A stretch of 64,000 nucleotides of DNA from Thalia democratica (taxonomy: Eukaryota): positions 71,982,001 through 72,046,000 of the forward strand of contig OZ241830.1 in assembly GCA_965202585.1 (NCBI GenBank), written 5' to 3'. The notes under the pieces are model-generated. The model saw only the letters and a list, made by a program, of their open reading frames with translations. It was not told where the DNA came from and searched no databases. Below are positions 26,335 through 57,894 of this stretch, in pieces. A program made the translations under genes and the position numbers. Every line of letters begins with the position of its first letter. Positions within the stretch are counted from its first letter, which is position 1.

Positions 26335-29300
26335 ATGATAACCACAAACACCCTTCTCATAGTTGGGCTGTTGGCCACTTTGGGTTACTCACAGAGACCG
26401 GACCTTTCAGCATACGAAAAAGTTGGACGTTAGTTTAGTTTAATTCATACTTTTAATAAATTAAAAACTGTTTTGTATATTGTCTAGAACTCTGTTTCGA
26501 ATTTATTTCATACCAAAATAACGTTTAATACAGTTGTTTGTGTGTAGTAATCAAAATTGAGTTGTATACAAACTGATATTTTGTAGTTTATACTTTAATG
26601 TTTTTTATACTTTAAAATGATATATTAGTTTTAAAAAAACGTTTATATTAGAAACGTTTTGAATATCTTAAGTCTTTAATAAAAGCTTCTTATTTCATGC
26701 TCGATTTAACTTCGTTTAAAATATTTTCCAAATGATAAACTTTATAAAAAGTGTCGAAAGCGAGTAAATTTTATACATTGTTGAGGTTTTAATAATAGAA
26801 TAATGTTATAGATATATAAGAAATCTATATATTTTTTTTGACGGTTTAATTTTTGAATTGAGAAAATATCAGTTTAAATAAAATAGGAAGTAAAATTTAA
26901 AATAGTTTTTAATTTGTGGTAAAAAGGTAACACAAGCAGCTTATTGCAATGATAAATCTTATCAAGCAGATAATAGTAGTTTTAGCGATTAATCCTCTTT
27001 GAAATTGTTTAACTCAAGAACATCTATATTATTAATAAAAAAGTAAGTAAACACTATACAGTTTTAATACATATTAAAACAAAAAATCATATATAAAATC
27101 TGATAACATCGAACATCGTTTTTTCAAATTAAATGAAAACATGATAAACTTTTGTTTAAAAAAGTGAAAGAAAAATAATCTTAGATACTATAATATCTAA
27201 ACATTCATTGCATAAAAAAACTCAGTTTGTTTTGCATATTTAAGCGGAAAGTTTTTTTTTCAGAAATAATTCCGTGCAACGGCTCGGAGATCGGGCTCCT
27301 GATTCCCCAGGTTGCCGAGTTCACAGACCTGACGGGAGAAATACTCTCCCCGTGTTTCGTGGACAACTACCTGGCACCGCTGAGAATTAACAGGAAGGTG
27401 TGGAGCTTGGAAGCGGTTTCTCCCACCGGGTACCCGATTGTCGGTACGTTGCTTGGTGATAAATTGATCAGTGATTACGTCACAACTGTTTACAAAAAGA
27501 TATTTCCGACTATGATAAATTAATTTTTTAAACGATAGATTGTCAGACTAAAACTAATAGAATGAATATCAGTCTATCAAGAGTGTAAGAGTCGTACTGT
27601 AGGGTATTTTAGGCTTAGCATGAGTATATTTGTTACTGAGTATAAATATATTAATAATAATTTACGGTTTTACAGTTTACTATATTAGGTATTTCTGTTC
27701 CTTTTAACTAAAAAGTAGGCACAAGTCTTTCATCGTAAAATTACTGAAATTTTTAATTTTGAAATCTAAGTTTTATAACTAAATTTTAAATATAATTTAT
27801 ATTCGTTAATTAGGTTTTTTAAATTATGTTGCAGATTAAAGTATACATTTAAATAAAGAATAAATGTTTTCTAATTTGTGTTGAATGATAATTTTATGAA
27901 AAGTTTAGTTTAATATGTTTTTATTGTTTTTAAAGTTTGTAGATTTGTATATATTCAACATAAAAATGGATTTTTATGACTGTTAATTTATTTGATAATA
28001 GTAAAACAAGTTCTGCATTGAGAATAACAAGACTAACTGCAGCTTTCGCAACACAAAATTATTTTGAAAACATTTCGAAATTTAAATTAATTTATGTTCA
28101 CAGGCTACCGCATGTTCATCAACGAATTTTTCACGTCCTTCGGTGAAACAGAACCTAATGGCGTGTTGTACTTTGGAAGCGCCAGAAACGAACCTGGTGT
28201 TGTCAGTCAGCTCATCCTTGTTTCACAGTTAGTAATTTATTGGTTAAATTGACAATAACGGTCAAATTTTTATTTATTATCATTTAAACTTGTTTGCCGA
28301 ACTTAACTAAACTTTGCGTCTATGATCACATAAAACGCTACTTTTACCAAGATAAATAACTTGATTATTTTTTTAATCGTATTTTAATACTCTCAATCAC
28401 GTTGTAAATCTAATAAATGTTAGTTATGTTTACAAAGCTCGAGTAAAAACATAACAAAAATCAAGATTTAGGTCTGAGAACAAGCAGCTTTGATTCAGAA
28501 ATATATGTAAAATTTGTAAATAACAATATTAGACTTAATATTTCTAATTTAAACTTTAACAAAGTAAATGCAAAACAATTTAAACAATTTTGTCTTTTTT
28601 ATTTATTTAAAAACATTAAAACACTACATTAAATTAGTTTTAAAACAGGTATGAGTTAGATATAAGCTTCACATGACAGTAGCAAAACTTAAGGAAACTA
28701 AAAATATGGAAGTTTTCAATTGTCACACCTTTAAAACATGACAAAGTACCGAAAGGATGAACTTTTTTTTTTCCAAATTTGAAAGCATTTTACTAAAATG
28801 AACAATTATGAAAAGTAACAGAATACTTAACGCTTCGATTGAAGTTAATATAAAATTTCCGATAATTTATGGTGTTGCACTTTCATTGCTACGCAACTCA
28901 AGTTTATTTCACCTTAAATAATACCAATATGTAATGAAAACCCTAATAAGGTAAACAAATAATTCATTTTTTGTTTTAAGACAAAACTATATTATTATGA
29001 AAATATGCAACTTAATGTTGGCTTGAGATAATACTTCTCAATTCTGAAATTAAAAATAAAATGTTTAGTCGCTTTTATGTTGCAGCGTTTTGTAGACTTT
29101 TAGTTTACTTGAAATTTTCTTTTTACAAAAATATAAACAATAACGTTTTTCGTTATTTTTTACTTTGTGTTGTTTTTAAACTAAATTCGTATTATGAAAA
29201 CTTGTATTTTGAAAACTTGAAAAATAAATGTATCACATAATTCTAAAACACCGTAAAACTAGTTTTAGATACGACTAAGCTACAAATATTTTTATTTGGT

Positions 29301-32300
29301 TTTAAGAATTATCATTTTTTATTTAGGGCAGTTTGTGATTTTAAAATTGAATGATTATATGTTTAATAAACTAAAAACAATTTTATTACTTAGTTCTAAG
29401 GAACTTATAACTATATACTTAAAAGCTAAAATCTCTTAAACTAAATATTTACTTTAATTTACAGTTTCCTCAAAACTACTTTTAATTGAGTAATTCATTG
29501 TTTTTTAAATAAATTTGTTAATCAAAAAAAAGTCCAAAAATTAAATACTTAAAGTAGAGCTAACTGCTATCATACTTTTTATAAAATACTAAACCGCTTA
29601 TGGTATAGGTTTCTACATTTTACTTATTATTGTACGTATAATAGAAAAAAATAAGGTTCGAAAATGTTCACTTGAATTTTTGAAATTTTACATCTGTTAA
29701 GTTTCCGGGTAACAGTCTTAACGGTAGAATTAAGGGTTTAACTTAATTGTTAGAATTTTCGAAATAGCAGATTACATTGAGCAAGTGGAAGAAAAAAAGT
29801 TTAAGCCAAAATTAAATAAAAGCAAACAGAGTTAGCAAGCGTGCACAGACGTCAAACAGAAATATAATTCTTCAAAGCAACTGAAGCAAGGAAATTTTTA
29901 CCGATACTATATTTAACATTTTTCTTCTCCTAGTAGCTTATACGGTCTGTTTTTCAGGCTAATTTTAGGAAACATGACTTATGATGTTTTTAAAGTATTT
30001 AAAGAAAATATTTTTTTAAAGTTGTTAAACAGCTCCTTTGATAAAACAAGACCAAGTTAAAACAAATTGAACTTACTTCAGCTTTTGAAAAAAGCGTTTT
30101 ACAATGAATTAAAAGTCATATAAATTTGTGTATTTTATATATCGTGATCTTTTGGTAAATTGGATTTGGGTTACGTAAACTACTTTAAATCTAATTTTAG
30201 AGTATAAAATATCATTTCTTCAACTTTGCATGAGGTAAACTTTGTTGTGTTTTGTGATAAAGTACGTATTAAAATTACTACACTTTGTTCATACTTTTAA
30301 TAAAAGCAAAACGTTTTAAAACGTACACCACAAACCACAAAAAATACATTATACATAATTACATAAGTTCATGACCATCAGAGAATTATTAAATGCTTAT
30401 TTCTTATAATTTTTAATAAAATCCAACCTTTCTTTTAGTTAGCAATCGGTAGTTAACCAAGTAAATTTAAAACCGCTAACCAAAAACAGATTAACTTAAC
30501 TGATAATCTGAAAACTACTTTAAACTCAAATTTAACACGATTATAAACTTAGTGGTTTACAAAGTTTAACAATTATTTCATACGTTTTAAACTATTAATT
30601 TTTTAACTTAAAATTTTAAACTACTAATGCAGTTTATTGCTTTATTGATAGCAACCTATACTTCTTAAACAAACTAGTTACTAAACAAAGCTTTTTATTT
30701 TTTGTGTCTTGCAACAAACATAATTTTAGTCGTGTTTTAACATACCAAGCTGGCTTTTTCCGAGTACACTTTTGAGCAGACAGAAAGCATTCTGTTTAAC
30801 TTCAGTTCCGAGAAGTTCTAATTGGTAAACTATCAAAATCCACCCGATTAAATTCCACCTACGTTCAAAATCCACCCATTTTTTAATTTTTTTTATTATT
30901 TATTAATTTTATTTTAAAACTTTTTGCATTTTTTAAGTTTATTTTTATTTATTTTTCACTGTAACTGTTACCCCTAACCCTTACCCTCGATCGGTAAGCG
31001 GTTCTCGAATTTGACTTAGTGGATTTTGAACATGTCCCGTTCTAATTAGCCCGAAAGTTTCATTTCAACGTCATAATTCAACTTTCACAACTTTAAACTT
31101 TCAGGCTGAACGATCTGTACGGGGACGGCACGATACCCAGGGACGTGGCGACCAACGAGGGGCTGACGCTGAGGACGGGGGCGGACAACTCGGTGCTGAC
31201 CAGGCTGCAGAACGGGGACAGCAGGGACGTGGAGATGCACCCGCTGTACTTCACCCTCGAGCACGACCTGGAGAGCGAGACGGGAAGGTTCAACATTTCC
31301 TTCAGGGCCGGTACGTTTGATAAGTGGTTTTAATTAAATTTAAATGACTTCTTTTGTAAAACTGTTTATATGTTAATCTGAAGTTAAATTTAGCTTAAAC
31401 AATGTATTGCTTAACAACCAAAAATACGGTTTACTTTATTTATAGTTTTATTTTGAAATTCAATAGAGCATAAAGCACTCTGCTTTTTTTTAATTAAAGA
31501 TATTTTTTTTATTTATACTTACCGATACAGGCTTGTTTACTTAACTATCTATCTTAGTCAAAAGTAACAGCATTTAATAACTTTATAGTTAGTATAGCAC
31601 TCTAACTTCTTTTGAGGAAAAAATTTTCAAAGGTAGACGCTCATCATTTCTGATTTTTTGCTAATTTTTAATTGTTTACCAATACTAAAGAATATATAAA
31701 GATCTTTTTCGTTTTACGGTGTCAAATTAATTTGTTAGAAGTTTTGCTCCCGATACTCTTATTAGCTCTTTTTTGCCAAGTTTAAAAAAAAGTTAATGCT
31801 GTCATGTTTTTGCGATTAGTAAGCAAAAAAAAGTTTTATTGCTTGATATGTTATTCATTCAAAATATTTTTGCTACGTCATCAAAAGGTTTGAGTTAACT
31901 TTCCATACAGATGAGGACCTGTGCAGTAATCCAGCTGGAGTGGCACCGTTTTGTTTGAACGGGGGATCTTGTAACAGGGACGGATTTTTCACATACTCTT
32001 GCGAATGCATTCCTGGATGGACTGGGGATAACTGCGAAATTGGTTTGTTTTTTTATATTCTATCAATTACTATATATAAAAGTAAGATGTAAAAACTATT
32101 TAGGTTTTGCTACTTAAGTTACATGGCTTTAAAATATGTTTACAAAACTTTTTTAAAATTGTGACTAAGCTAGTTATCATATTGTATGGTATTATATAAT
32201 TTTTGTTGATAACCTGTTTTAATTAAATTTTTTAAATAAATATATAGTATTAGAAACAAATATTCGATTAGAATTAAAACAACGTATACTACTACAGTAA

Positions 32301-35300
32301 ATTTATTATTTTGAGATAAAAAACACTATTGCTCAAGTTCAGAAAAATAAAATTTTTGAGATTGTTAGTATTTTTTCATCAAATCAAAGTTCAAATTTTA
32401 TAAGGTTATAAGCAATTAATAAATGGGTTCCCTTTTAAACTACGAAACGTGTATTGCAAAGAGAAACCCTTACATAATTGATAAAGGGAAGTATGCTTGT
32501 GTAATGACATATGAAGCAAGATTAAACGCTCCAGTAAGTTTAAACCAAGGCATTACAAAACAATATATTTGTAAAGTCTGCAACATGTAATCAATCACTT
32601 AGAGTTTTATTCTATTTTAATATTCATTCACGACGGTATTAATAGTGTTTTAAAAGTTTTTATCTAAGCATTTAGTTATAAAAATTTAGTTGTCACTCAC
32701 GTACTTGTGACATTTTTATTTAAGATTCAGTTTTTTTTTTAATATAATTTAACGTTAAAATTTAAGGTTTCTTTTAGACAGTTTTTGTTTGTGTTTGGTA
32801 GCTCTATCACTTGCTTAAACAGTTTTTACTTATTATATAAGAAACATCATCAACAACAACTATTTAAATGTAAGAATATTTAAGATTGTAAAAATTACTC
32901 TAAATACAATTTATAACAGATGTCAATGAATGTGCTGATGCTACTTTAAACAATTGTGATGATGATGCAACTTGTACAAACACTGATGGAAGTTTCACTT
33001 GTGCTTGTAATGATGGCTTCACTGGAGACGGTGTCACTTGCGATGGTTTGTTAATTAAATTTGTTATATTCTCACGCAATTTTATAGAATAAAGTTAACT
33101 TAGGGTGTTAACTTATTTTAGTTTGCCACGAAACTGTTAGTCAGTTTTGTAAACTGTTATTTCCAGTAAAAAACCTCTTTAACGTTTTTAAAAATTTACT
33201 CTTTAACTCCATATCAATTTTTTTCTTAAACTAGTTATTAGAAACAAAAAGTAAAACCTATTTTGATTAAAACTTTCTAAGATACAATCTATTATTCATA
33301 CTATCAACTACCAATTTATTAATGGTCATTCAAACAACCAAAGTTTTGTTTTTGAACGCAGATATTGACGAGTGCGCTGACGCCACATTGAATGATTGCG
33401 ATGATCCGGTTCGGGCTACGTGCAACAACACTGCCGGCTCATTCAACTGCTTCTGCAATGCTGGGTACGCTGGTGATGGTGTTACTTGTACTGGTTAGTA
33501 CCTTAGTATGCTTTTTAAAGTATGTACGATAAGATGCGTGTGTGTTAGGTTTTGTTTATGCTATACTCATTATTTTGCACAACTTGAAATTTTATTTACA
33601 AAAAAATTTTAGAATGTTACGACAAAAAGTAAATAAATATATCTTTTACTGAGTAATAATAATAGTTATACTTTATTAAAGTAGGTTTTGTCTAAATACT
33701 GTAAACTTTTTTAATTTCAACCTAAACAAAATTTCAGTTCCCATTGTTAATTAATTTGGTCAACTTTAAAACACGAGCATGACATTTTAAATTAAAACAA
33801 ACAAACATTTGATTGTTATTAGTAGTTAAAATTTGTTAATTTTGGGCAACCAACGAAATAAGGATAAGTAATAGTTTTACAAGTCAATTTTTACTAAAGT
33901 AACGATTATAAGCTTTGTAAAAATATCCATAAAAAGACTTATACTTTTATAGATAAGACAGATATATTTTGTTTGTATTTTGAGTAACATTTTGTTATTT
34001 TTTTACATACAGAAACTTTAAGTATAACACTCATTTTATTTACACTTTTCTTATTTATACAGACGTCGACGAATGTGCACTGGGTACTGACAACTGCGCA
34101 GATGGTACGGCTACTTGCGCGAACACAGTTGGAAGTTTTACGTGCACCTGCATAACTGGCTACACCGGGGATGGTGTTACTTGCACTGGTTCGTTTTTAT
34201 TTTTTTTTGTTTTTTTGTGACTTCAGAAATACAACTTATACTTAAGTACAGTTTTTATGAAAAAACCAAAATAATAGTTGATAAGAAAAACTATACTTGA
34301 ATGTAAAAGTATGAGTATAAAAGATAAATACATTGTGATATCAAAAGCGATTCCAACACCTGTTTGTAAGAAGTTATCAAAATCAAGCGTTAAAATACTT
34401 CCCATTTAATAAAAATCTTAACCAACATGATACTTTATTTCGCTCGACTACCGAAAGGTTATTTTTGTATACCAGGTCGTACGACCAAATAATTTTTTTT
34501 CAATAAACATTATATGTATTAGATATTGATGAATGCACACTCGGAACTGACAACTGTGCGAACGACACGGCGTCATGCACAAATGTACCTGGCGGATTCG
34601 TATGCGAGTGTATTACCGGATATACCGGGGATGGAGTAACTTGTACCGGTAAGTTTGTCAACTATTATCTTTATTAAAAAAAAACAGTATTTAGATTAAA
34701 GTATACTTCAAAAGACTTTTTTTTAATTTTAACCTTGCTAAATTATAGCTAATTATTCCTAGAGATTTATTCGACAAACTTTTGAAAACTAATAATACTA
34801 AGTTATAAGTATTTACAATTTAAATTTTGTCATGACAACTATGACGTAACAGATGTGGACGAATGTGCAACTGACAACGGAGGTTGTGGAAATGTTACAA
34901 CTTCCTTGTGTACCAACTCTATTGGAAGTTTCTCTTGTTCCTGCAGAGTCGGATTCCCTGGAGTGCCACCCAACTGCGAAGGTATTGAATAAGTAATTTT
35001 TAGTAGTATGCTAAACATTTTAAGCTAGAAAATTACAAAAAACCCTAATACGAATTAGATTTATTTTATAGTACCTTTTATATCCATAAGAGTTTCAAAA
35101 AAGTAAACTGTTTAAATATAGACAATTTTTTATAACTTGCTGTTTTAAAATTTGTTTTATATACTTACTATATATTATGATTAAGCCCATAGATTTGACT
35201 ATTTCAATAAATGAATTTATAGTAGGTTGAAGTTACATATTTTTTATACATAGTATACGTTAATAGCATATGATGCTACAACTGTTTTTAACTTATTTTT

Positions 35301-41300: not shown

Positions 41301-44300
41301 AAATTTCATTTACTAAAATAATGTTTAATTATGTTTCGAAATTTTTTTATTAAAGCATTGAGGGTACATTTTAGATAAGTATAACAAATGTTTTTTCATT
41401 TACCTACATTTGAAGTAGGTGAGATAAAAGTATTATAAAAAATCTTGGTATAGAATTGCTTGAAAATTTTAAAACTTACTTATTACGTCTACCACAACAA
41501 CCTCATAACTTTACAGACAATGACGAATGTTTGGACCCGAGTGTATGTGTTAGCGACAGAGAAACTTGTGTGAATACGGTCGGTAGTTTCAACTGTATAT
41601 GCGATTATCCCTTCTGGAGGGGCGAACCATCCGCTTGCGAAGGTTTGTTAACATCATGTAGTTATAATTACTGTTTTTCGCTCGGTTTATAGCGTTTGTG
41701 GTAACCTGTTTGTTATCAAAGTCACTTTTATCATACTAAATTACAAGTAATTGTTAAACAATTGTTAGTTAAAGTTTAAGAAAATTGTCCTGAAAAACTT
41801 AAACCAATTTTTCTCATCTAACAAACAGGATACTACTGTGTCGGCAACACTGAAACGCTGATGAACTGCGTGATTGGACCTGGCTTCCTCGAGTGGCCGG
41901 TACCGTGGAACGGAACTGACACTTACAACATCAACGAGCAAGTTTCATGGTTCGTCGACGACCAAGGAACTGGAAGTAAGTGTTTGCACTATGACGATTT
42001 TTAGATGAATAAAGGTAAAGAACATTTTTAAAGTTTTTTATCTTATTAATAGCTGTATATCATTCTAATTTGCTACAGTTTTTAATTTTATGTTTAGAAA
42101 ATGATACATTTTTAATAGAAGTTTTAATGTTTTTTCTAACTATTACAACACTTATCGCAGGTATCAGATTCACTCTGCTTGAGTTTTCTGTGAACGACGA
42201 GCAAGATTACTTCCTCATCAGCAGAAGCCCCAACCTTCGTGACATTTCATCTTACGTTGCTGTTGTAAGTATTTACTAATGATTCTACTATTAAAACAAG
42301 ATTGCACAGTGAAAAAACTTTCAATAAAAGTATTTTTTTTCAAAGTTTATCGCCTAAGACTGGTTTTCCCTTTTAATATGAAATTTTAGATCTAGTAATA
42401 AACTTATCTCCTTTCTAACAGATAACTGGTGACAAAGCGAACTTGTTATCATCGCAACAGCCTGCCACAGTAGACAACTTGCCGGGATGGAACCCTGACG
42501 CCAACACGATTGACGTGGCGACACCTGACGGCGGTATCTACATTCACTTCTTCTCTGACAGGAGCATCGTTGAAACCGGTTTCCTTGTTGGATACCAACT
42601 CGGTCAGTTGAACTTTTTAAAATCTTTTACGGGCCAAACAAAGCTTTTATGATTATTAAGTATTCGTATTTTTATACTTTTTTAATGAAAGTTTTTATTG
42701 TTATCTAAAAATTTATGACTGTTTCACCATAGTTGAACCATATAGAGCAATTTACAAATAACATTTGAGTTCTTTCACACAACAGTCTGTTATATTCTAA
42801 ATAAAGCTTGTTTAGACTTAAAGCTTAATATTAATTATCATCAGACGGAGACGATTGCGCGGGAGTAGTGTGCGCAAACAACGGAACTTGCGTTGATGGA
42901 GAGTTCGAATACACTTGTACTGACTGTCCCGGTTACACTGGGAGGGACTGTGACGTCGGTTAGTAGATAAGTCTATCAAAAATTTCGAATAAGTATTACT
43001 GAAGCTAAACAACTTCTTTATATTATTTTAGCTATAAGACTGAATCTTTCTACTCAATGTAGCTTTGTTCTTGTAAATTCTATTAGGTATCTATAACAGC
43101 TATTTAAAGTTCACCACATTAATTAAAACGTCACAGACATCGACGAATGCGCGTTGGGAACTGACGATTGTGACGACAACGCCGATTGCACGAACACGAT
43201 TGGCTCGTTCACTTGCGCCTGCCGAGCCGATTTCACCGGAGACGGAAAAACTTGCAATCGTTAGTTTGTTGTATAGCATTTTATCATCATTGTATAATGG
43301 CATTTTATCATTATACCATTTTAAAGATTTTTAATACAAGTAAGTTATAAATGTTTACACAGTAAAATTAAAAATAGTTTTGATTTTTTTTAATTAAAAC
43401 CTATATTCAGTTAGTTGTATTTTTTAAATTGGTACTAAAAATTAAAATCTACTTTTTATTGTGTTCAAATTAGATAACTTCAATGACTAAAATATATCTT
43501 CAATAAGATTTAACAAAATTAAGAAATAGATATTTTTATTTGGTTATTCTTATAAAAGTAATTATACTACAAAACATTTTCAAACAACACTTAAACTACA
43601 CATAAAAGATAAAGCTCTATACTTATAGTTTAAATTAACAAACTAGCTCTGATAATCTTGGATTCGTGGAGCGTTGCTGTCGTCGGTCAGTCGTTGCAAG
43701 TGACCCCCGTCGTAACTGAGCTTTGGGCCAAAAACACCAACTACGTCATCACCTACAACGTCATAGTGAGCAGGGTTTCCACCGGTGACGTCATAACTGC
43801 TGAATCGAACCAAGTCGATGCAGACAACTTCTCGGTATGACTTGTACTGAATTTTTGATCATTTTGTTTAGGAGGAAATATCTTTTTAAACTAAACGTTT
43901 ATTGAAGTTTTATTTAAACTTTCTACCGAGTCAAATGTTAAAATTTCATTTTAATACTGCAATTTTTTTAATGTACATATAAAAAGTAATATTATTTATT
44001 TATTTTAAAACTGTATTACCCATCTAAGACTATAAACAGCTTAAATGACTTATAGAATTAATTAATATATCTTCAATCCCTTGTAATTTTTTTTATCAAC
44101 TATTTTCAACACCAATTAAAGTCCCATTGTTACAGCCAATCGTAGTCGAGGGGTTGGTGCCTTTCAACGAGTACGTTGTGACAGTCGTGCCTGGACTTAC
44201 TGGTGCCTTCTTCGGTACTGCAACTTTTGTTAATAATGGAGCACCCGTCAGCGCAACTACTGATGGAACAAGTTTGTTTCCCTTTTTTTTTGCAAAAAAA

Positions 44301-47300
44301 CTTACTGAGTATCAAAAGTGAACCCAAAAGTTTTTAAAATTATACCTACTTTAATTATAAAAACAACATTTAAATTTATAAAAAAATTTATTGGAACCCA
44401 TTGTTTTAAATTTGTACTAACTCCGCTTTTCTTTCTTAAATACTGAAGTATTAGAAAATTAAAGCCTAGTTTAAATTCTTTTGAATATTTTCAATATGCA
44501 GCATAAGTATAACTTTCTAATATAAAACTTTATGACGTCATCATCATTTCAGCACCTCGCGCACCAACTGGACTGACAGTTAATGCCAGTGACATGACAG
44601 CCGGTTTGTCCTGGGTTGCACCGGACGAGACGGACAGAGGCACCACCCTTTATTACATCATAACGGTCAGGCGAACTGAAGAGGACTGCACCAGGTTCGT
44701 ACCCATTGGCGACACTAAGGATTGCGACGAAGCAAGAGTAAGTTTGTTAATAATTAATAAACAATAAATGTGTGGTTTATTTTGTAAAACACAAAACATA
44801 ATTTTATAAATACCACTTTACAGTAAAACTTAAACAATGATGTAATTATTTTATTTTACAACTAATACTGTTATTAAAAATAATACAAGTTTTTTATTTT
44901 CAGACTAAAACATAGTTTTGGTACAATATTTTTTTAACTTATATTTTAACTAAAGTCATTTTATCTTAACGTATTCCACAGGAGTTCAATGTTTCTGCTC
45001 CCCTCACTGCGTTGGACATCAGTTCCTTGGTGAGTTTCAGAACTTACCAGGTATCCGTCACCGCATACACAGCTGCCGGTGCTGGCTCTTCCAGCTCCGT
45101 GTTGACCTTTTTCACCGGTTTGTTTGATGGTTTTAATGCTGAAAAAAACATGTAACGACTTAAATATCTTTTAAAAGAGATCTTGAATTATTTACAGTTA
45201 TGATATTTTTGTTGTTTGGTTTTTATGTCATTACAAACCTATCGTGTCTAATGTAAGAAAGTTTATAAACTTTTCATTTTTAAAGTCCTCAATGACAAAA
45301 ACTTATTAAACTTTTTTATCTTTGTGATAAACCATACACTGAATTATGACGTCAAACACAGGAAACGTATGCCCGCATTTCGACGGAGGTGATGCCCCCA
45401 TTGTGTGCACTTTTAACACGGCAGTAATACAGAGCCCCAACTTCCCAGGACAATACGGAGTTTTCGCTGACGTCTTCCACGTCATCAACTTTAACGGGTC
45501 AAAAGGTTTAGTTTTGATTTTTGGTTGTTAAACTGTTAAATGGTGTTTTAATTGATAGCAATAACTTTTAGATAATTTTTAAGACTTTTTTTGTATAACT
45601 TTAAATGTCTATTATATTAGAGTAAAAAAATATGATGCTAACATTAATTTAAATGTTCTTTAGATTTTCAAATTTAAGCACGCATATTTTAATCAAAAAC
45701 TAGTACCGTTGTACTTAACTGCTTTTTAAAATGTTACACAATTAAACAAAACAATATATTTTAACCACAGCTGTCAGATTCACGTTTGATTACTTCAACA
45801 CTGAACTTAACCAGGATTTCTTGGACTTTGGATCTGCTGATGTTCCTCTTGTTGAAGGACTCAGCCCTGACTTAGTGTAAGTAGTAGTGCAATATTGTAA
45901 ATGTTTATTAGAAAGTAGTTTTGTTAATGAAGTTTTTTTTTTAATAACTTTGTCTATTCATTTTGGAGAATTGAATTAAAGTTTTTGACTAGTTAAGGGA
46001 AAAATACTAATGTTTTTTAAATAAAGCTAACGACAAAACTAATGTCTCGAAAAAAGAGCAATTTATTGCTTTTAATCTAAATTTTTCGCTCCGTTTTTTT
46101 ATTGTAGTTAAAGCCCTTGTTTTTATTTAATCAACATAAATATTCTATAGGTTCTAGGCACATACTATTTTGTAAAACGAGATCAGATCAAAACATCATA
46201 CTTTCTATTACTTTTAAAACCTTTAAACATGTTCTTAAATAGTTTGTAACAGAACCTAAATAATCTTAACTAGTATATTTTAAACAGTACGGACTCATAC
46301 TCTGGTGATTTGACAAATGATGGAGTTAGCAAGATATTTTTAGCTGAGGACACTGGACCCCAAGTGTGGGCCAGATTCGCAGTTGATTTGTTCAACACAG
46401 ATGAAAGCAGCTACTTAGGTTACCAAGTCAAATACGAGCTCGGTTAGTTTGTATGCATTTTTCTGTACAAGATTTTTTATTATTATGAGTTTTCTCACTA
46501 ATTGTTAATGCTTTGCTTTTATCTAATGACGTACTACATACAGAAAATCTAACTTTTAAACTAAGTAAATAAAAATTTGACAAATGATCTAAAATATTGT
46601 TTTTTGTTCTGCTTCCAAACAGGTATTGGTACATTCGTGTTCTATTCATTTTAACCTAGTTTACACATTTACTACATGTTTGTAAATTATACACAAACAA
46701 ATTAACTAAATTAAAAACTTAATTATTAACTCATTAAACAACATTATGACGACACAGACGGAGACGATTGCGCGTCAAGCCCCTGTTTGAACGGAGGAGT
46801 GTGCAGTGACGGGGTGTTTGATTTCTCGTGCACGTGTCCCGATGGTTTTGGTGAAAAGACATGCTTGCGTCAGTTAAAAATTTAATTAAAGAATTTTAAG
46901 TTTGATTTACTTCCAAAAACATAAAACAAAAATAGTACAAATTTTATAAGGTGTTTGACGTTACAAATAAAACTAAAAAGTAGAACCAGTTGTTTAAAGA
47001 TAGAAAGAAACCTTACGTTCTAAAAGTTGTATTTAAACGAGAGAAAAAGTTTGTAGAAAATAAACTATATATTTAGAACCTTAAATTTAACATAAAGTTT
47101 ATACAAAAAATTCAATATAAATACTAACACAGCGATCTTGACCACGACACTATCTTGTTCTTCTCCATCCACCAGTGAAGTCACAGCTACTTGGTCGGTA
47201 TCAGCTGCTGATGGTGTTGATGTTGAAGCACTTGTCACTGTTCGTTTGTTTTAATATTTTAAAAATTTAAAAAATAAAAATTGCATAGTTAAAAACGTTT

Positions 47301-50300
47301 CTGAAAAAAAAAATGTAGAAACTACTTTCTTTGTATTTAATAGGTCATCACTTTTTTATTAGATTTATTTGTAACTCATTTGGAATAAATTTATTATCTT
47401 TAATATTTTAAAACTAAACAAACAAACATTTTAATATATATGTTGACAGACGTACACAGTAACAGTGAACGAAGTTGCTTCGTTAACAACTAATACCTCA
47501 GTTACCTTTGACGGATTCGAACCTGAACAACCTTACGAAATATCTGTGGTTCCTGACGCAACCGGAGCTTTGATCGTTGGGGATACTTGTAGCGGAAACA
47601 CAAGTTTTTTTTTGCTAAATAATTTTTGATTGTTAAAACTATAAATCCTCAAACTGTTTTTTAAGCATCGTTTTTCATAACTCCCTTTCAACTATTTTGT
47701 ATAACCCTGACGCCTTACTGCTTAAGGAGTAAAATGACATGACTTAAATCTATATAGTGATTAAAGCAGTGAACATTTATGTACTAAACGCTTAATACTA
47801 ACTAAACATTTGTTTACCAATCTGTATATATATATATATAGATATATATGATTTAGACCATTATTTATTTGTACCTGATGATCTGATTTTATTACTGAAA
47901 TATTGTCGTACTCAAACTAGTTAACTAAACAGTAATATTGTTATTATTGGTTACTTCATTTATAAGCACTTTAAATTTTTTCATTAAGTAATTCACTATA
48001 TAACAATAGAGATTTATATAAAAGTAGTAATATTTTACGTTTTGTTTGAACTTTACAAAATCTAAAGTTTTATTTGAAAATCTAAACTTAAACCAATGTA
48101 TTCAGGAGCAATCATTCAGAACTTTGTGACGGATCTTGCAGTAACAGGAGCTACTTGGAACTCATTGAGCCTAACATGGGGTCCACCTATACCATTGTTG
48201 ACAGACCCACAAACATATTCGTGAGTTTTAGACTTCATGTTGCAAAATATTCGTAACAGTAAATTATTTTAAACACATGCATTTCCTCTGCTTAATTGTT
48301 TTGTTGATAATTACATTATCATTATGCTACGCTTATTATACCGGGTTACTTACTAAGTTATTAATAAAATAAGAGTGTAGTTTAGTAAAAATTTACACAA
48401 TTTTATGATGGGTAAAAGCTAAAGTACAATAACATACAAGTTTTTCAGATGTTCTAAAACTAACTTAGAATAAACTAAAAGCTTCAATTGTGTTCAAACA
48501 TTACGTAAAATGCTTTCAATACAAGGAACAATAAGCTAATATAGATAAGACTAAACATAACATACATTATACTAAATGATATAATACAATATATTGTTTA
48601 ATGTATAAGTAATAACAACCAACTTATACCACAAACACACAGAGTAACTACAACAGTGGACGGAGTCGAGACAACCGAAGTAGTAACCGCCGAATCAATC
48701 ACCGTGAGCGATTTGCAGCCCGGTAGCAGTTATGACGTCACAGTGGCCGCAATCGACGCTGATGGCGCCACCACGCGACCAGTGACCGTTTCAACGTCAA
48801 CTGATCCCGAATCAGGTTGGCGATGGTATTTGTAACAACATAGTCTATCAATTATTTTCCCAGGGACTTTATATTTATATGTGTATTAGTGTTATGATAC
48901 ACCAGTTAAACTTGTATATAATATAAAATACTCGACAAAAGTCTTAACTTATTTTGTAAAAAATGTTATTCATTTTAATTTATATTAAGTTATTACAACC
49001 GTTTTAGTTAGTAATAATGATGTTAGCATAACGATTGCTTCTACTTTCATAACAGCTCCGGCAGCTGTATCAGGTGTGGTGCTTTCAAGAGATGGAGAAA
49101 ATGTGAACGTTAACTTTGTCGCTCCTGATCCAGCCAATGGAAATCTACTTCCCTATGATGTTGAATACACGTTTGTTATTTTTTCAATTCATTACACTTA
49201 TATTTTTTATTGCTTAAATAATTGTAATGATGGCAATGATTTTTGACGTATATAACTTTAGTTGTAATTATTTTAAATAGTAGAAAAAGTATTTGACCTT
49301 TGTTAAACCACATATTCTTTGTTATTTATTTTATTTTGTCGTTTTAGAACGTTGCACAAAAAGCCTTTTAAAATCATAAAACACCTTTCATTAAACTTCA
49401 ACAATCATATCATCATGAAAAAATATTAACAGAGTGCGTAATTGTACTGAACCAGCTTGTAGTGGTACTATAGAAGTAAATGCTGACCAGACATCCACAG
49501 AAATTGAAGGTCTTCCCCCGTACAGGTTTGTTAATTGAAAAATAGTTTTGTTTTATATTAAAAGTTAGTTTATTAAAACGTGTTAAAATTAAATTTATAC
49601 ATATTGCAACTGCTGGTAATAAACGTCTTGCTTTTTTTTTGAATTCCGATATCAAATAGTTTAAAAAATGAAAATAAATCAACCAGTCTAAATTTTTATA
49701 ACATAAATTTACTTCTACAATGTAAAAAGTTAGTTCGCTTAAAATGAAGGTAACCATTTTTTCAATAATTTAGATATTTTTATTTAGTCTTCTATTACTT
49801 ATGTAAATTTTTCTACAGCTTGGTAGATGTAGTTATTGTGGCAGCTACAGCTGGTGGATCCACACGAACAGATCCTATAACGATTTTAACAAACCCTGGA
49901 GGTAAAAATTGTTTCTTATATTTTTACACTAGCAGTTATAACATGATTTAATAGTAGATATTTAGTTTTTCACTACTCTTTGTTTTAAGTTATACTCCTT
50001 GATTGTCGTTAAATGTAATCTTATTTAAAGTATATATGTTTAAAAAATTTTCATACTCCTGTTGTTTACAGAGACCTTTAATTCTTTTGAGTATAATTAA
50101 GTTGTTAAAACTGTACTCTTTACTGCAACTCGATATGTTTACAAAACAGATACAGGTTAACCAAAAACTTATTTATGTACTTTTGATAAGCAATTTTTGT
50201 AATATTATTTCGCTATTGCTAAAAGCATGTCTTACAACATCATTACATTATAGTGAACATAAAGTAGTTTTTACTTACATAAACAGTACCGGGACCTGTG

Positions 50301-53144
50301 AGCTTAACACAAGTGTCTGAAACACCAACAACAGTGACTGTCCAAGCATCCCAAGTAACAGATGCTTCTGTTGGTCCTGAGACCCTTGTTGTCGTGGCAA
50401 CTCCGTTTGGTGGCGATGCATCTCTTCCTGAAATCACCACAACTGTTAGTTGAAATTATGTTTGTTATAGGATTAAAAAGAGTTTTTTATACATATAAAA
50501 TAAAATATACTCATTTAGTTTTAATTTACACCGACTTATAAGCTAATTTCATTAGATTTTCCAAGTTCTTTAACAAACTATTAATAACATTAAACGCAAG
50601 TAGGACTTTTGAATTAAGACAAAATTTTTTGTATGATGTAGCTACCAACTTACTAAACATTTTCATGATAAAAAGTTTGCTCAAAAGCAATATTTTTTAA
50701 GTGATATATTGTAAATGCTAATGTTACCTAGTATTTTTAGTAACACTTATAGTATCTTACTTAATAATTAAAAAACTACTTTGCTTTTACACTACTAGTA
50801 CTATAAGACGTATAACTCGTTTTGAGTATAATTTACAAAAACGTCAGGTGGCAAACGTAAGCTACCCAGTAGATGTAACACTGGAAGGACTAGTAGTAGG
50901 ACAAGCTTACAGCATCGTTGCAACCCCATCAACTACGACTGGAGCTGCTTCTGAATCAGGCGCAGTTATCCTTTATAGAGGTATATTTTCTTAAAAGATT
51001 TTTTTATCTTTGAAACTGTAGTAAACACTTTATATTTAGTACAATACATAGTTTAAGTTTTGTTAGTCTATTGTGATTTGTCTTTTTTGCTATTGTAAAA
51101 TAAACTTTATTTTTTATCGTGTATTTTTAACAAAAAAAACTTTAGCTCATCCAAACCATGTACCACTAATATTTATTATGTCTAACTAGTTTTAGGAAAG
51201 TGACAAACACTTATTACTTACGATAAAAAATATATCGTTTTTGTTAAAGTTATAATAATCAAGCCAAGATTGCCGAGTTTCAATTATTTAGCTTAACAAA
51301 CTTTTAACACTATATTTGTTTAAGAGCGCTAAAACGCTATTTGTCATGTAATGATTGTAAACTTTGAAACAATAGTTTTTTAAACACATAAGAAATAAAA
51401 ACATAACCACTTTCCAACAGACCCAGTCATAGTGGCGGACGACGCCGCAGTGAAGGAGGTTCTGACCGTGCCTGCATCATCGGAATCTGTTCCTCCTGCG
51501 AGCACCTTCTCCTTCCCGATCAACAATCCGTGTCTGAGCAAGGACGAGCTGTTCGACGAGGACGGAGGAGAGGTGACCGAGGTGGAAGTTTACGTGAGGG
51601 AGGCCTCCTCCGTTGAAGCTGGTACGAATATTTACCATGATTTATTTATATAAAACTTATGAGTTTTAAATTGATTTTTGTGTAATAAACAAATTTTATA
51701 AAACAAAGAAAATTAAACTGATAAGAAATATTTTAAATTTCAAAACTTGAAACAATTTTTATTAAAAACACCATATTTAATAAATTAATATTTACCACGA
51801 TACAAAAGTATAACTTATTTTCTTAGATAAATATAATCATTGAAATTAAATTAAACAAATCAAGTTTAAAACGTTTACAAATTCAAATCTTATTCTAAAT
51901 TTAAATTTAGTAAACGAGGACAGCCCTGCAACGTGGGACGCGTCCATGTTCAACGACGACAGGATCGTGAGCCCGTACCTCGCCTTGACCGTGCAGTGCG
52001 GATCGGGCAGAAGGAGGAAGAGACAAGCTACAAGCGATATTGTTATCGTCGGTCAGTTGAAGTTGCTTGCGATATCAAAAAAAAAACAGTCGGTTCATGT
52101 GCTCGTAGCAGCACCGTTTTATACAACGCTTTTTTATTGTTCCTTGTTGTATTGTCGTATTACTTCAAATTTACAAAGCCATACTCTTGTGAGAACTGTC
52201 ATAAAAGAACTTTGAAGTTAACTTTTTTATTTCTGATAAAAAAACAATTTGAAATGAACATTTATTAAAATTTCTTCCGAATAACTTTAACGAGAACGAA
52301 CCGTTTTAGTAACATATACTGTAAAATTGTTAGGATGATATTTCTCAAAGCTCAAAATGTTTTTTAGGAGCTGATTCCGATTGTTTTGAAACAAGGGAGG
52401 CGGGTTGCAACGGGCCTCTGCCGGCAGGAAGAAGCTACGACACCGCTTTGAGGGCGAGGAATGTAGGTGGCAAGGAATCAGGTGTTTCCGATTTCACCAC
52501 AGGGGAAGACGGGGTAGGCGCCTTCTCAACCAGTCCCCTACCAGGTATGCTGTTGCTACTGACGACAGACTTACTGTCGATCGCGCCTGTTTAGTTGTTG
52601 TTTTGAGTAATGTACAATTAATAGCTTCATGATTCATGAAAAAAATTACTGACTAAAGTAAAATTTAAAAAAAGTTAGCTGTGAAATTCCAATCAAAATT
52701 GTCATAAAAACCTTTAGGTAGAAGAGTGTGTTTTTATATACTTGCCTACATACATATTTATAATAATACAACAGAGGGACTTCAACCCGGAGAGATTGCA
52801 GCAATTGTTATCGGTTGTGTGATCTTCCTCTTGCTTCTCATTCTTCTCATTGTCTTCTGCGTCAGAAAGAGGTTTGTTGCTTTATAAAATAATTTATAGA
52901 CGTGATTGAAACAACAAACAATTAACATTGGTTTTTAGTTTATAGATTATAAGTATCGCATATTTAATGAGTGAGTTTATAAATTAAGTTTTACGAAGCT
53001 CATTAGACTAAGATTTCATTAAAAACTATCAGGAACCGCAGAGGTAGCCACAACGTATCAGGGTCATCGAATCCCGCATTTTCAGAAAAGAAGTACGACG
53101 TTTCCGTGGCTCAAGTGTCCACCACTTACAGTAAAGAAGTTTAA
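26335..53144 (+). CDS. Large type-I membrane protein with CUB, calcium-binding EGF and FN3 domains, 49 coding exons, about 2289 aa
   Basis: Phase-consistent exons: 26335-26428, 27264-27443, 28104-28227, 31105-31310, 31911-32042, 32920-33045, 33362-33493, 34063-34188, 34523-34648, 34853-34981, 36249-36380, 36708-36836, 37196-37324, 37921-38181, 38388-38513, 39045-39173, 39424-39552, 39783-40043, 40247-40372, 40549-40677, 41041-41169, 41517-41642, 41829-41975, 42161-42264, 42422-42602, 42845-42958, 43137-43259, 43647-43834, 44136-44271, 44553-44737, 44982-45117, 45362-45505, 45771-45876, 46288-46442, 46758-46868, 47133-47239, 47450-47603, 48106-48220, 48643-48815, 49056-49170, 49433-49525, 49819-49901, 50287-50444, 50848-50980, 51421-51621, 51911-52051, 52368-52544, 52775-52871, 53033-53144. 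The sum is 6870 nt with no internal stop. Signal peptide [19 protein letters not shown]. Confidence 0.85.
27264..31310 (+). CDS. Receptor exons 2-4: divergent N-terminal CUB-like domain
   Basis: [63 protein letters not shown] has CUB-like spacing (ILSP, W, F-x-S/T-D equivalent). Domain call is by eye. Confidence 0.6.
29761..29960. repeat. Dispersed repeat of about 200 bp in receptor intron 3, inverted relative to 54619-54820
   Basis: The reverse complement of 29821-29960 matches 54619-54757 with few mismatches (core AGCAAACAGAGTTAGCAAGCGTGCACAGACGTCAAACAG). Weaker similarity extends about 60 bp further. Confidence 0.85.
30816..31047. mobile_element. Degenerate MITE-like insertion (about 216 bp) in intron 3
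   Basis: An 8-bp direct repeat TTCTAATT lies at 30816-30823 and 31040-31047. Subterminal inverted motif TCAAAATCCAC / GTGGATTTTGA, with internal CCCTAACCCTTACCCT. The terminal TIR bases are degenerate. Confidence 0.5.
31911..41642 (+). CDS. Receptor exons 5-22: array of 20 EGF domains (19 calcium-binding type)
   Basis: Repeated D-[IVQN]-[DN]-E-C...C-x-N-x-x-G-[SGT]-F-x-C-x-C-x-x-G-[FYW]-x-G..C. All exons are phase 1-1, 126-132 nt, plus two 261-nt double-EGF exons. Confidence 0.93.
37173..40677 (+). repeat. Internal tandem duplication of a 4-exon (5-EGF) unit: about 37173-39173 and 39401-40677
   Basis: Exons 13/17, 14/18 and 15/19 are near-identical, and 16/20 are paralogous. Introns 38182-38387 and 40044-40246 are alignable. 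Confidence 0.9.
41829..46868 (+). CDS. Receptor exons 23-35: CUB2, 2 EGF, 2 FN3-like, CUB3, EGF
   Basis: [20 protein letters not shown] and [27 protein letters not shown] (CUB). [20 protein letters not shown] (FN3). DGDDC..CxNxGxCxDG (EGF). Confidence 0.85.
47133..53144 (+). CDS. Receptor exons 36-49: about 4 FN3-like repeats, juxtamembrane module, TM helix and short cytoplasmic tail
   Basis: [22 protein letters not shown] (FN3), [49 protein letters not shown], tail [39 protein letters not shown]. Confidence 0.85.
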
Positions 53145-54618
53145 TTTAGTTCAATTTTACCATTAAAAACCCTTGTCATCCGATACAAGCTGAGATTATA
53201 AAATATATTATGAATCATTGGTTTATTGATTGAACTATTTTGTCATTTTTTAAAATATATACTTTCAAATACACAATAATCGATTTTAGCTTGCCTTTAC
53301 AGAGTAAAACACGATTATTTTCATCATTTAAAATTCAGCTGCATTTAAATCATTCGCAATTCTAATTTCTTCAAAGTTTTTGCTTTAATTTTGACTTTTT
53401 CTTCAAACGTTTTCTGCCTTGTTGTGTTGTTTTATTTTTTAATATTATGCAAGTTTATTTCTTGTTATATTTCGTAAAGAATAACGTATATTTATATGTT
53501 TTGTGCGTGCCATCAAGTCAAATGATGAAACTTTTGTTTTTTGATGGCAATTAACTATTAAAGTTTTAATTAAATACTTTTAATTGTTATATCAAAAAAA
53601 TATGTAGTTGTTTTGAAGCTCTACCGAACTAATCTCATTTAATTTTTTTACAAATAATATCTTAATTAATGTTTCATGTTTTTTTTATAGTGGCCTAAAC
53701 TAAAAGTTCTTTACCATATAGGTTTTAAAATATAGTATTTGTTTTTACTTAAAATAAATTAAGTTTATTGAAACTGTTGTGCTTTTTTTATTTATCTTAA
53801 GTGGCGCAAAAATGATTGCAGTAAATAAAATTTGAAATAACTTTTTTTGAAATTTATTACTTACATGGAATGTTTGGCACACCCTTTACAAAAACTTACA
53901 CGCTTTTATAACTTAAAACTATATAATGATGTACTTATTACTCACACTACAAATGACTGTTTATAAAAAATCGATAATTTAATCTTTATCATAATTACTT
54001 TAGAATTTATTAAAAGTTTGCAATGTAATTATTTTTTGTAAAAACTGAAACACATTTATTAATATAAAAATATTGATATAAAAACATATGGGTTATTTTT
54101 TGATTAATTAAGTATTCCATTACCAAACATTAACAGCAAGTAATAATTTTAATTTAAGAAGTGAAATTAAATATAGGGTTATATAATCATAAACGATTAA
54201 ATTAATTATTCAAGTGACTTTTAATTAAATAAAATGTTTTTTTGGTTATTAATTAAGTAACTTTTTCAAATGTGTATGCAAAGTGTTACAGTTTTGATTG
54301 CACTTATCTGATTTTTCATATATCATGAAAATTTTAGATAAAAATTAAAATCATTTGCATCAAGTTCTTAAATCCCATTAGTAAAAATTATGTAGCTTAC
54401 GTTAGCGTAATCAAAATTATACAAACATAAAAAAAAAACTAAGAAAAATTATTTTGTATTCAGCTCTAACTTTTTTAAAAATTACAAGGTTACTTTTAAC
54501 AGTTTTAACTTTTAGACGTGATTCAGAGTTGTTTTGTTTTATCAAAAGAGTTTTTTATAAACATTTAGTAAGTATTAAACGACTTTTGTGTTTAAAAAGT
54601 ACTTCACTATCCAACAAT

Positions 54619-54820
54619 AGTCTGAAAAACAGTCCATATAAGCTACTAGGAGAAGAAAATGTTAAATATAGTATCGGTAAAAATTTTCTTGCTTCAGTTG
54701 CTTTGAAGAATTATATTTCTGTTTGACGTCTGTGCACGCTTGCTAACTCTGTTTGCTATTACTTCAGTTTAGCTTAAACTATTTCTCTTACACTTGCTCA
54801 ATGTAATATGCTTTATTTAA
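54619..54820. repeat. Dispersed repeat, inverted copy of 29761-29960
   Basis: See 29761-29960. Confidence 0.85.
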
Positions 54821-57028: not shown

Positions 57029-57894
57029 TTAGCAGTGGTAGATGACTGGGGTGTAACATCCCTTGTTGTATCTTCTTCTGTAACAACAAGTTCTGCGACG
57101 GATGATTCTTCTTGGGTGGTAGGTTGGTCTGCAGTATGGAACGTATCCTCTGCTGTAACCTTTACCGTAGTATGATGGGCTGTATCCCTTGCTGTATCCT
57201 TTGTTGTAGTATGATGGGGTGTATCCCTTACTGTATCCTTTACCGTAGTATTCGTCAGGGATAACCAATCCTGGGGAGATATAGTTGTAGACAAAAAAAA
57301 GAGCAAAAGTTAGATTTTTGAGTGAAACTAAAACATCAAATGATAAAGTAGTATAATTTTATTAATATAATGATTGTAGTACACAATAAAAACAGACAAA
57401 TAATTGAAAAAAAAAATTTTACGAATATTCTTTTATTTTTGTCAATCATCTAACAAATATCATATAACTTTAACGGATAATTTTTTTGCATTAGATAAAA
57501 ACAAACTTAATAACAGTTAATTTTTCAGATGTATACTTGTGGTAAAAAAAAGTTACATGTTCAACAATGAAATGTAACATTAGCGCACAACAGTTATCTA
57601 TTAAATAGTTTTTAAAATAAAGATTAAAAATCTCACTTTTAAACTAATTTATCTAAAATAAATTTAAATCAAGAAAAAGGGAATTAAAAAAAATCAAAGA
57701 TGTGTATTATATTGTTATAAATAACTAAAGCCTGTTTCGATCGTTAAACTTGATCATATTTTTATGATGAGATAAAAATTACAGTTTTTAATTAAATGAC
57801 TAAACATACCAGTTTCTTTTTCCATTGGTGGAGTGAATGGGTTTGGGATGGCAAGAGCTGCTCCAATGAAGCACAAAACAACAAACAATTTCAT
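57029..57894 (-). CDS. Small secreted Tyr/Gly/Lys-repeat protein, copy 2 (108 aa; exons 57894-57810, 57270-57029)
   Basis: Same structure as copy 1. Differs by L10I in the signal peptide and one YSP to YTP change. Intron GTATG..CCAG, 539 bp. Confidence 0.9.

Follow-up and report, generated by a model that had tools for sequence, protein, structure and literature searches.

What kind of receptor carries the membrane-proximal module of an R3 receptor protein tyrosine phosphatase (RPTP) and ends, 39 residues past the membrane, without a phosphatase? The question is raised by a gene in a 64,000-nucleotide stretch of the genome of the pelagic tunicate Thalia democratica (assembly GCA_965202585.1, contig OZ241830.1, positions 71,982,001 to 72,046,000 of the forward strand; hereafter the window, in whose coordinates all positions are given unless stated otherwise). 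Our analysis of this locus supports, with a probability of roughly 0.75, a single expressed gene for a non-enzymatic type I membrane glycoprotein, in which a very large mosaic ectodomain stands on a cassette of the NoCat type. NoCat is a phosphatase-less relative of the R3 receptors, from which uroplakins 2 and 3 are thought to be derived (PMC5242461).

The window is very AT-rich (GC 0.21-0.33), and its plus strand presents, between 26.3 and 53.2 kb, a dense run of short open frames whose translations are EGF-like, FN3-like and CUB-like. Splice-site and codon models trained on the 25 clearest exons were used to chain these frames by dynamic programming, resulting in a single 48-exon gene (26335-53144, plus strand) with GT-AG at all junctions and no internal stop. 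After one RNA-guided correction, the model runs from an ATG at 26335 to a TAA at 53142-53144 and encodes a type I membrane protein of 2,249 aa. From the N terminus, the domain order is signal peptide, CUB-like module, 20 EGF, CUB, two EGF, two FN3, CUB, EGF, four FN3, juxtamembrane domain, transmembrane helix and a 39-aa tail, exactly the order and counts given by the original prediction, which a model had made from the DNA letters and a list of open reading frames. Above the juxtamembrane domain there are, in total, three CUB-type modules, 23 EGF modules (20 of them calcium-binding) and six FN3 domains.

The juxtamembrane cassette and its family

Uroplakins 2 and 3 and the R3 RPTPs share a long FN3-like juxtamembrane domain together with the transmembrane segment, as described by Chicote et al. 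2017 (PMC5242461). Among the R3 members, the domain is found in PTPRQ and PTPRB, weakly in PTPRJ, and in invertebrate proteins as far as sponge (PMC5242461). In that account, domain and transmembrane segment take up four exons, whose intron phases are 1,1,2,1,2; cysteines C3 and C4 occur in all members, with C1 and C2 present from tunicates onward; the signature C3-x(n)-C4-NGPL is "found only in UPK2/3 and R3 PTPR"; and an Rx(K/R)R furin site follows C2 in UPK2a and in many invertebrate R3 members (PMC5242461). The same work introduces the Ciona "CionaNoCat" proteins, which lack a phosphatase and in which the domain is accompanied by a few FN3 and a short, UPK3a-like tail (PMC5242461). The features of the Thalia gene that correspond to this cassette are as follows.

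51421-51621, 51911-52051 and 52368-52544, plus strand: exons 44-46, long juxtamembrane FN3-like domain (RNA junctions, published alignment)
52009-52023, plus strand: furin-type site RRRKR, three residues past cysteine C2
52406-52438, plus strand: C4-NGPL-x5-Y signature, found by pattern; the wider signature covers residues 2124-2139
52775-52871, plus strand: exon 47, transmembrane exon, with the helix at 52795-52863 (23 residues, IAAIVIGC...FCV) and the stop-transfer RKR
53033-53144, plus strand: exon 48, most of the 39-aa tail and the TAA at 53142-53144; the preceding intron is of phase 2
53145-53768, plus strand: 3′ untranslated region (UTR), with AATAAA at 53753-53758 and the ends of RNA contigs

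Judged from these sequence features, the stalk belongs to the R3-RPTP/uroplakin type of long juxtamembrane FN3-like domain. The domain holds four cysteines (C1 in ..NNPC, C2 in ..VQC, C3 in ..DSDC and C4 in GCNGPL), and the C3-x(n)-C4-NGPL signature is present as IVIVGADSDC...CNGPL. Matched by eye, NNPC and TVQC of the C1-C2 pair sit where CionaNoCat has ENPC and TIQC, and the putative furin site RRRKR comes after C2, as in the family. The exons for domain and transmembrane segment measure 201, 141, 177 and 97 nt, and four of their five intron phases (1,1,1,1,2) agree with the published layout. A degenerate DNA pattern for CNGPL-x5-Y matched ten places in the 802-Mb genome, only one of which, at 52406-52438 of the window, is coding and in frame; the other nine are copies of a stop-riddled, dispersed non-coding repeat that reads CNGPLWETLIY and occurs on several chromosomes.

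The original prediction had placed a CNGPL motif in the juxtamembrane exon and NPAF in the tail, and both are there. It had also taken CNGPL, five residues and a tyrosine as a mark of the R3 RPTP membrane-proximal module, a view that is borne out by published alignments in which CNGPL+5+Y appears in PTPRQ, Ptp10D, sponge and annelid R3 proteins, and UPK3B (PMC5242461).

CionaNoCat.1/2 (Ciona intestinalis XP_018669650.1, "PTPRQ-like") likewise come from a tunicate and likewise have no phosphatase, and the following likenesses to them were counted by eye on the published supplementary alignments. The last two FN3 domains of CionaNoCat are collinear with FN3-5 and FN3-6 of the Thalia protein (P-x-PANG-x-LL-x-Y, cysteine-containing loop), and in both proteins the final FN3 ends ..LYR just ahead of the juxtamembrane domain. 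Within that domain, ENPC-NRK..LFSEIGGVIT.IEVIV of CionaNoCat is matched by NNPC-LSK-x-LF-x-E-x-GG-x-VT-x-VEV-x-V, TIQC...GRKKR by TVQC and then RRRKR, and YVIGAE..TC, which in human PTPRQ reads YIIGADNAC, by IVIVGADSDC. Both proteins share CNGPL..GR.Y, the Ciona segment being TCNGPLISGRQY, and ..FSTS.. just before the membrane. The transmembrane segment is identical at 18 of 31 positions, including the helix start GEIAAIVI, and in both it closes on CV plus a basic stop-transfer (CV[KR][KR]R). About 18 of the 39 tail residues are identical in C. intestinalis NoCat.1, with H-x-VSG, N-x-x-F, K/R-Y-x-V, STTYS and a C-terminal KE-V/I as common blocks. The endocytic reading of the tail motif NPxF, proposed in the original prediction, is weakened by this alignment, in which the Ciona tail has NRSF: the proline is lost there, and what is conserved in the tails lies elsewhere, in the Tyr/Ser/Thr-rich STTYS block and the C-terminus among others.

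The Thalia protein therefore combines what characterizes the NoCat type, namely juxtamembrane domain, transmembrane segment and short conserved tail with no protein tyrosine phosphatase (PTP) domain. On this sequence comparison we regard its C-terminal part as the counterpart of Ciona NoCat, with uroplakins 2 and 3 as the same cassette reduced further. Uroplakins 3a/3b and 2, the partners of the tetraspanins UPK1a/1b, have the same juxtamembrane domain (C1-C4, C-N-[GAP]-P-L), with the furin site after C2 in UPK2a, a transmembrane exon followed by a phase-2 intron, and a short non-enzymatic tail with phosphorylatable Tyr and Ser/Thr, as in Thalia. They differ in being vertebrate-specific and in that the one domain makes up their entire ectodomain, whereas in Thalia it is the stalk of a huge mosaic and about 2,000 residues precede it. 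The R3 RPTPs (PTPRQ, PTPRB, PTPRJ, Drosophila Ptp10D/4E/52F and sponge R3) have the same membrane-proximal domain and signature with FN3 domains above, and the core of human PTPRQ, IGAD..C...CNGPL..Y..[FL]RA.N, is about 40% identical to Thalia, counted by eye. Both of their defining features, the PTP domain and the FN3-only ectodomain, are absent in the Thalia protein: the ectodomain has 23 EGF and two to three CUB modules, and in place of a single cytoplasmic PTP domain there are the 39-aa tail, a stop and a 3′ UTR.

Transcription and the absence of a phosphatase

Marine metatranscriptome contigs from two studies and several ocean samples, 95-99% identical to the window, were aligned to 49400-55300; the last nine exons are expressed, and the 3′ end is fixed. 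The junctions seen in RNA are 49525/49819, 49901/50287, 50444/50848, 50980/51421, 51621/51911, 52051/52368, 52544/52775 and 52871/53033. The contigs cross the stop codon into a 3′ UTR of about 625 nt ending at about 53768, and the AATAAA at 53753-53758 stands 10-15 nt before these contig ends. The original prediction holds nearly to the base, and the RNA junctions are those of the 48-exon model with one correction at exon 46, which by RNA starts at 52368 and not at 52371 (a NAGNAG acceptor), giving ...IVIVGADSDC...; the acceptor that is used adds Gly-Ala and thereby completes the IGAD motif of the family.

Over exons 40-48, the ocean RNA contigs and the genome differ at 17 positions, 13 of them synonymous and 4 non-synonymous, which indicates that the gene is under purifying selection. 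These data also bear on the idea that the locus is a decaying or non-functional duplicate, to which recently duplicated EGF exon blocks, the sign of a locus in flux, lend some color. We give this idea next to no credence, since the frame is open over 48 exons, several ocean samples of two studies contain correctly spliced transcripts of the gene, and synonymous differences prevail.

No coding-like phosphatase frame was found on either strand of 53.2-64 kb, and no splice joint leaves exon 47 or 48 in the RNA contigs (contigs only, from which rare isoforms can drop out), in agreement with the earlier statement that no phosphatase exons are visible behind the gene and that transcripts splicing onward to such exons would contradict it. 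When the 802-Mb assembly was searched in six frames with PF00102, 82 exon-level matches were obtained, none of them on the same contig (C6) nearer than 59.69 Mb, with the window at 71.98-72.05 Mb; the closest phosphatase-domain match on this chromosome is thus 12 Mb off. In the 11 kb downstream of the gene there is only the remnant of a transposase besides small genes for secreted Tyr/Gly/Lys-rich peptides, of which one is on the opposite strand.

An R3-type stalk is also what a true R3 receptor phosphatase would show if its catalytic exons lay beyond the window or in another isoform, and the RNA evidence consists of contigs, which lose rare isoforms. Such a gene is nevertheless highly improbable here: the stop comes 39 residues past the transmembrane helix and is followed by a continuous 3′ UTR with its AATAAA and contig ends, no joint leads out of the last two exons, no PF00102 match lies within 12 Mb on the chromosome, the downstream neighbors are of the kinds just named, and the tail is conserved with a Ciona protein that has no phosphatase either. 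A non-enzymatic receptor thus remains the preferred interpretation.

The catalytic R3 gene of this genome was not found among the PF00102 matches looked at. An intronless frame of 939 aa on another contig (C10, 13.75 Mb; L035 2434-5253) was rejected as an R3 sibling, being of the FERM-PDZ-PTP type (PTPN3/4-like). An uninterrupted frame is unusual for the PTPN3/4-like family, and the C10 gene may be a retrogene.

The CUB and EGF ectodomain

The part of the protein that sets it apart from the described members of the family lies above the stalk, and its exons are the following.

26335-26428, plus strand: exon 1, start codon and signal peptide, with a hydrophobic core and a GTTAGT donor; from the DNA model alone
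27264-27447 and 31105-31310, plus strand: exons 2-3, N-terminal CUB-like module (CUB1), with a 3.6-kb intron between them; the least certain part of the model
31911-41642, plus strand: exons 4-21, 20 EGF modules (one plain and 19 calcium-binding), with D-x-D/N-E-C starts and the Asp/Asn-hydroxylation consensus
41829-42602, plus strand: exons 22-24, CUB2, divergent and with an insertion (full-profile hhalign; local CUB hidden Markov model (HMM) matches at residues 1051-1097 and 1136-1162)
42845-43259, plus strand: exons 25-26, EGF 21 (plain) and EGF 22 (calcium-binding), by six-cysteine pattern or model
43647-45117, plus strand: exons 27-30, FN3-1 and FN3-2, with a phase-0 intron inside each
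45362-46442, plus strand: exons 31-33, CUB3, containing SPNFPGQY (local CUB HMM, hhalign)
46758-46868, plus strand: exon 34, EGF 23, by six-cysteine pattern or model
47133-50980, plus strand: exons 35-43, FN3-3 to FN3-6 (Pfam fn3, local FN3 HMM, RNA junctions, Ciona comparison)

The EGF modules are the most numerous, and a six-cysteine EGF pattern found 22 of them against a mean of 0.3 in shuffled sequences, missing the 23rd (exon 25), which has CxxC. The calcium-binding start D-x-D/N-E-C and the hydroxylation consensus are seen in 20 of the 23, and Pfam EGF_CA matches the double-EGF exon 37923-38180 with E=1e-16. The exons of the array (4-21, of which 13 and 17 carry two EGFs each) are all of phase 1-1, so that copy number and exon skipping could vary with the frame intact. 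Within the array, a block of three exons and four EGFs has recently been duplicated in tandem (37162-38526 and 39390-40385), with exons 12 and 16 being 95% identical, exons 13 and 17 96%, and exons 14 and 18 close too; these last two share 86-91% identity with exon 5.

For the CUB modules, an HMM was built from 20 Pfam-verified CUBs of the same genome and run on the spliced model, with 51 shuffled or reversed controls reaching at best 1.7 bits. CUB3 is recovered with an i-E of 1e-7 and by hhalign with a probability of 88% (E 3e-6), and CUB2 with a moderate hhalign E of 3.6e-4 across the whole CUB profile. Pfam gave zero matches on single CUB exons, the CUBs being split over exons, and a similarity search with exon 3 returned only spurious beta-barrel leads. 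The FN3 halves overall match Pfam fn3 below threshold, with E of 2e-5 to 0.05, including both halves of FN3-2 (2e-3 and 2.6e-4) and, along the stretch from FN3-3 to FN3-6, matches of 2.3e-5 (exon 38), 6.8e-3 and 0.048. FN3-4 is also found by the local FN3 HMM (i-E 4.5e-6), FN3-1 is assigned on pattern only, and FN3-5 and FN3-6 are assigned on pattern and collinearity with Ciona.

Tandem calcium-binding EGF (cbEGF) modules interspersed with CUB modules are also characteristic of known mosaics, namely fibrillin/fibropellin-type cbEGF rods, cubilin, SCUBE and tolloid/MASP-type proteins. To our knowledge, none of these ends in FN3 repeats and an R3/uroplakin juxtamembrane cassette. SUSD1, to which the original prediction also ascribed the CNGPL module, is a type I membrane protein that has EGF modules and a short tail; in the literature searched, nothing links it to the juxtamembrane module. 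The domain is treated there only by two 2017 papers of one group, which describe it below FN3-only ectodomains or alone. The published Ciona protein has five FN3 only, in a model without a signal peptide, as opposed to three CUB-type and 23 EGF modules in about 2,249 aa in Thalia. By this comparison, the published Ciona NoCat model may be 5′-incomplete, and the CUB/EGF front end may be either thaliacean-specific or tunicate-wide. The new element is thus the large CUB/EGF ectodomain on a NoCat-type cassette, which makes the protein a variant of a described family and not a wholly new receptor. The original prediction had spoken of an unrecognized, lineage-specific architecture; this stands for the front end, which is undescribed in the literature searched, and has to be given up for the C-terminal part, which is known from CionaNoCat and the uroplakins.

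The front end would lose its connection to the cassette if the model fused two genes, a secreted CUB-EGF protein (exons 1-26) and an FN3/juxtamembrane/transmembrane protein (exons 27-48). The RNA contigs are placed on 49400-55300 only, the published Ciona model is FN3-only, and symmetric phase 1-1 exons make chaining in frame easy, all of which would suit a fusion. However, CUB3 and EGF 23 (45362-46868) lie between FN3-2 and FN3-3, within the part that belongs to the transmembrane protein, and because they are interleaved among the FN3 domains, the mosaic cannot be dismissed as a neighboring gene. Introns are short throughout, with 388 nt between EGF 22 and FN3-1, and the two blocks are not separated by a stop, a second signal peptide or a long gap; the Ciona model, beginning without a signal peptide, itself looks incomplete at its 5′ end. 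We accordingly consider a fusion unlikely and retain the single gene.

Several points weigh against reading the locus as one gene that joins this ectodomain to a NoCat-type cassette. RNA support spans exons 40-48, and exons 1-39 rest on the DNA model. CUB1 is not significant against the local CUB profile, showing a weak "G.I.SP..P..Y" start and a likeness in the C-terminal strand. The CUB, FN3 and juxtamembrane domains are each split over two to three exons, and the Pfam, profile and fold searches covered single exons; taken singly, exons 44-46 matched no Pfam family. One internal intron of the cassette is of phase 1, where the family has phase 2. Neither an R3 RPTP nor a uroplakin was returned by a phmmer search with exon 46 against 1.84 billion proteins (E<=0.001). 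What carries the homology call is therefore the agreement of motif, order and gene structure with machine-read supplementary alignments, and cleavage by furin, association of the two chains, pairing with a tetraspanin and signaling by the tail, which are taken up below, are steps that we infer.

The same phmmer search did return five repetitive FN3/low-complexity proteins, which are not orthologues, and for a half-domain of 57 residues at about 35-40% identity, a match at E<=0.001 among 1.8 billion sequences is not expected. Similarity searches led from exon 46 to generic FN3 only and from exon 44 to nothing, a protein search with the stop-free frame around exon 45 found one unspliced genomic fragment only, and a search of the PDB with single exons gave nothing. 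Exon 46 alone thus resembles the C-terminal half of a generic FN3, without a significant R3 or uroplakin match, as would be the case if CNGPL were a chance match in an ordinary FN3 domain with no specific kinship to R3 RPTPs or uroplakins. We judge such a coincidence very unlikely in view of at least seven independent collinear features (the four cysteines, the furin site after C2, IGAD..C, CNGPL+5+Y, the distance to the transmembrane segment, GEIAAIVI and the tail motifs), a four-exon layout and a phase-2 intron after the transmembrane exon that fit the family, and a motif that occurs once in coding frame in 802 Mb. Kinship with the R3 RPTPs and uroplakins remains the reading that we prefer.

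Proposed working, wider meaning and neighboring genes

Recognition of other proteins or of glycans is a typical role of CUB and EGF modules. In the Thalia protein, a rod of 19 cbEGF modules, stiffened by calcium, would project the N-terminal CUB several tens of nm from the membrane, and the CUB heads, held far out in this manner, could serve adhesion or ligand capture. The RRRKR site, which comes after C2 and before the IVIVGAD strand, is inside the juxtamembrane fold, and furin would be expected to split the protein there into a large chain with the ectodomain and a stub some 140 residues long; both chains may stay joined as halves of one beta-sandwich. Such a joined-chain arrangement has been observed in the ectodomains of other RPTPs and was proposed for the prosequence of UPK2a (PMC5242461). 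A complex prediction without alignments, in which exons 44, 45 and 46 were entered as separate chains, scored 0.04, a value that speaks neither way on chain association.

The stub could signal through its conserved tail (HxVSG, NxxF, K/R-Y-x-..., C-terminus). Although too short to be an enzyme, the tail is conserved between Thalia and Ciona, which argues for binding of a cytoplasmic partner and for phosphorylation, and phosphorylation of UPK3a on Tyr/Thr has been shown in vertebrates (cited in PMC5242461). By analogy only, the partner in the membrane is perhaps a tetraspanin, as uroplakins 2/3 pair with uroplakins 1a/1b. Taken together, these steps would make the protein a receptor for adhesion or recognition that is processed by furin and uses its conserved tail for signaling.

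The 2017 report confined the juxtamembrane domain to R3 phosphatases and uroplakins, that is, to ectodomains with FN3 only or with nothing else. The occurrence of the same domain, helix and tail under a CUB/cbEGF receptor suggests a cassette that is combinable with other ectodomains, and the phosphatase-less tunicate intermediate of uroplakin evolution may have looked different from what was supposed. As a more speculative extension, which we hold to be possible and would not bet on, the NoCat lineage, proposed as the stepping stone from a PTPRQ-like phosphatase to the vertebrate uroplakins 2 and 3, would be a giant mosaic adhesion receptor and not a truncated phosphatase; its furin-processed juxtamembrane domain, transmembrane and tail segments would form a portable anchor and signaling cassette, uroplakins would have arisen by stripping of the CUB/EGF/FN3 ectodomain, and the tail (STTYS, K/R-Y-x-V, terminal KE-V/I) would mark an adaptor pathway common to tunicates and possibly to UPK3a. 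As tunicates are the sister group of vertebrates, the Thalia gene and its Ciona counterpart provide a natural outgroup for the role of the uroplakin 3 tail, and the same outgroup bears on whether furin processing of the stalk and tetraspanin pairing preceded the uroplakins. The practical value is modest: the annotation of a large tunicate gene is improved, and the conserved motifs of its tail are now defined.

The neighborhood of the gene also deserves a description. The secreted-peptide gene mentioned above has two exons and is present in three copies, at 6334-7000 (minus strand), 57032-57927 (minus strand) and 61612-62156 (plus strand), which lie on both sides of the large gene, two of them as an inverted pair. 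Each encodes a signal peptide (MKLFVVLCFIGAALA) and a mature part of Tyr/Gly/Lys repeats (YGKGYSKGYSPSYY) with a Cys/Arg-rich block at its end; Pfam matched nothing in these genes, and their products could be an adhesive, tunic or cross-linking family. Upstream lies a trypsin-family gene (about 10028-14279, plus strand), whose last catalytic exon matches Pfam Trypsin at E=2e-11. Its His (TAAHC) and Asp (DIALL) motifs are kept and GDNGGP replaces GDSGGP, a change at the active-site serine that probably makes it a non-catalytic protease homologue; a Ser/Thr-rich, mucin-like exon (14543-14983, plus strand) follows it. The transposase remnant downstream (58362-59540, minus strand) is of the hAT/BED type, with a BED-finger-like CxxC...HxxxxH and a weak match to the Hermes DNA-binding domain (E 0.023), and is flanked by inverted copies of a short repeat.

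Elsewhere in the assembly, the mitochondrial COX1 gene (contig C1833) has AGA/AGG at 32 positions, including the invariant glycines of GGGDP and WFFGHPEVY. These codons are read as Gly only under the ascidian mitochondrial code (Arg or Ser in other animal codes), which identifies the source as a tunicate. A Hydra-like cnidarian, first considered for this AT-rich genome, is rejected on this code and on the marine origin of the RNA; the original prediction, too, had probably taken the DNA for that of some other kind of animal. Cellulose synthase (PF03552) and GH6 (PF01341), looked for as tunicate markers, gave no match or none that was informative. Nuclear copies of COX1 with many stops (nuclear mitochondrial DNA segments, NUMTs) form a cluster at 56.84-56.95 Mb of contig C4 and occur on contig C757.

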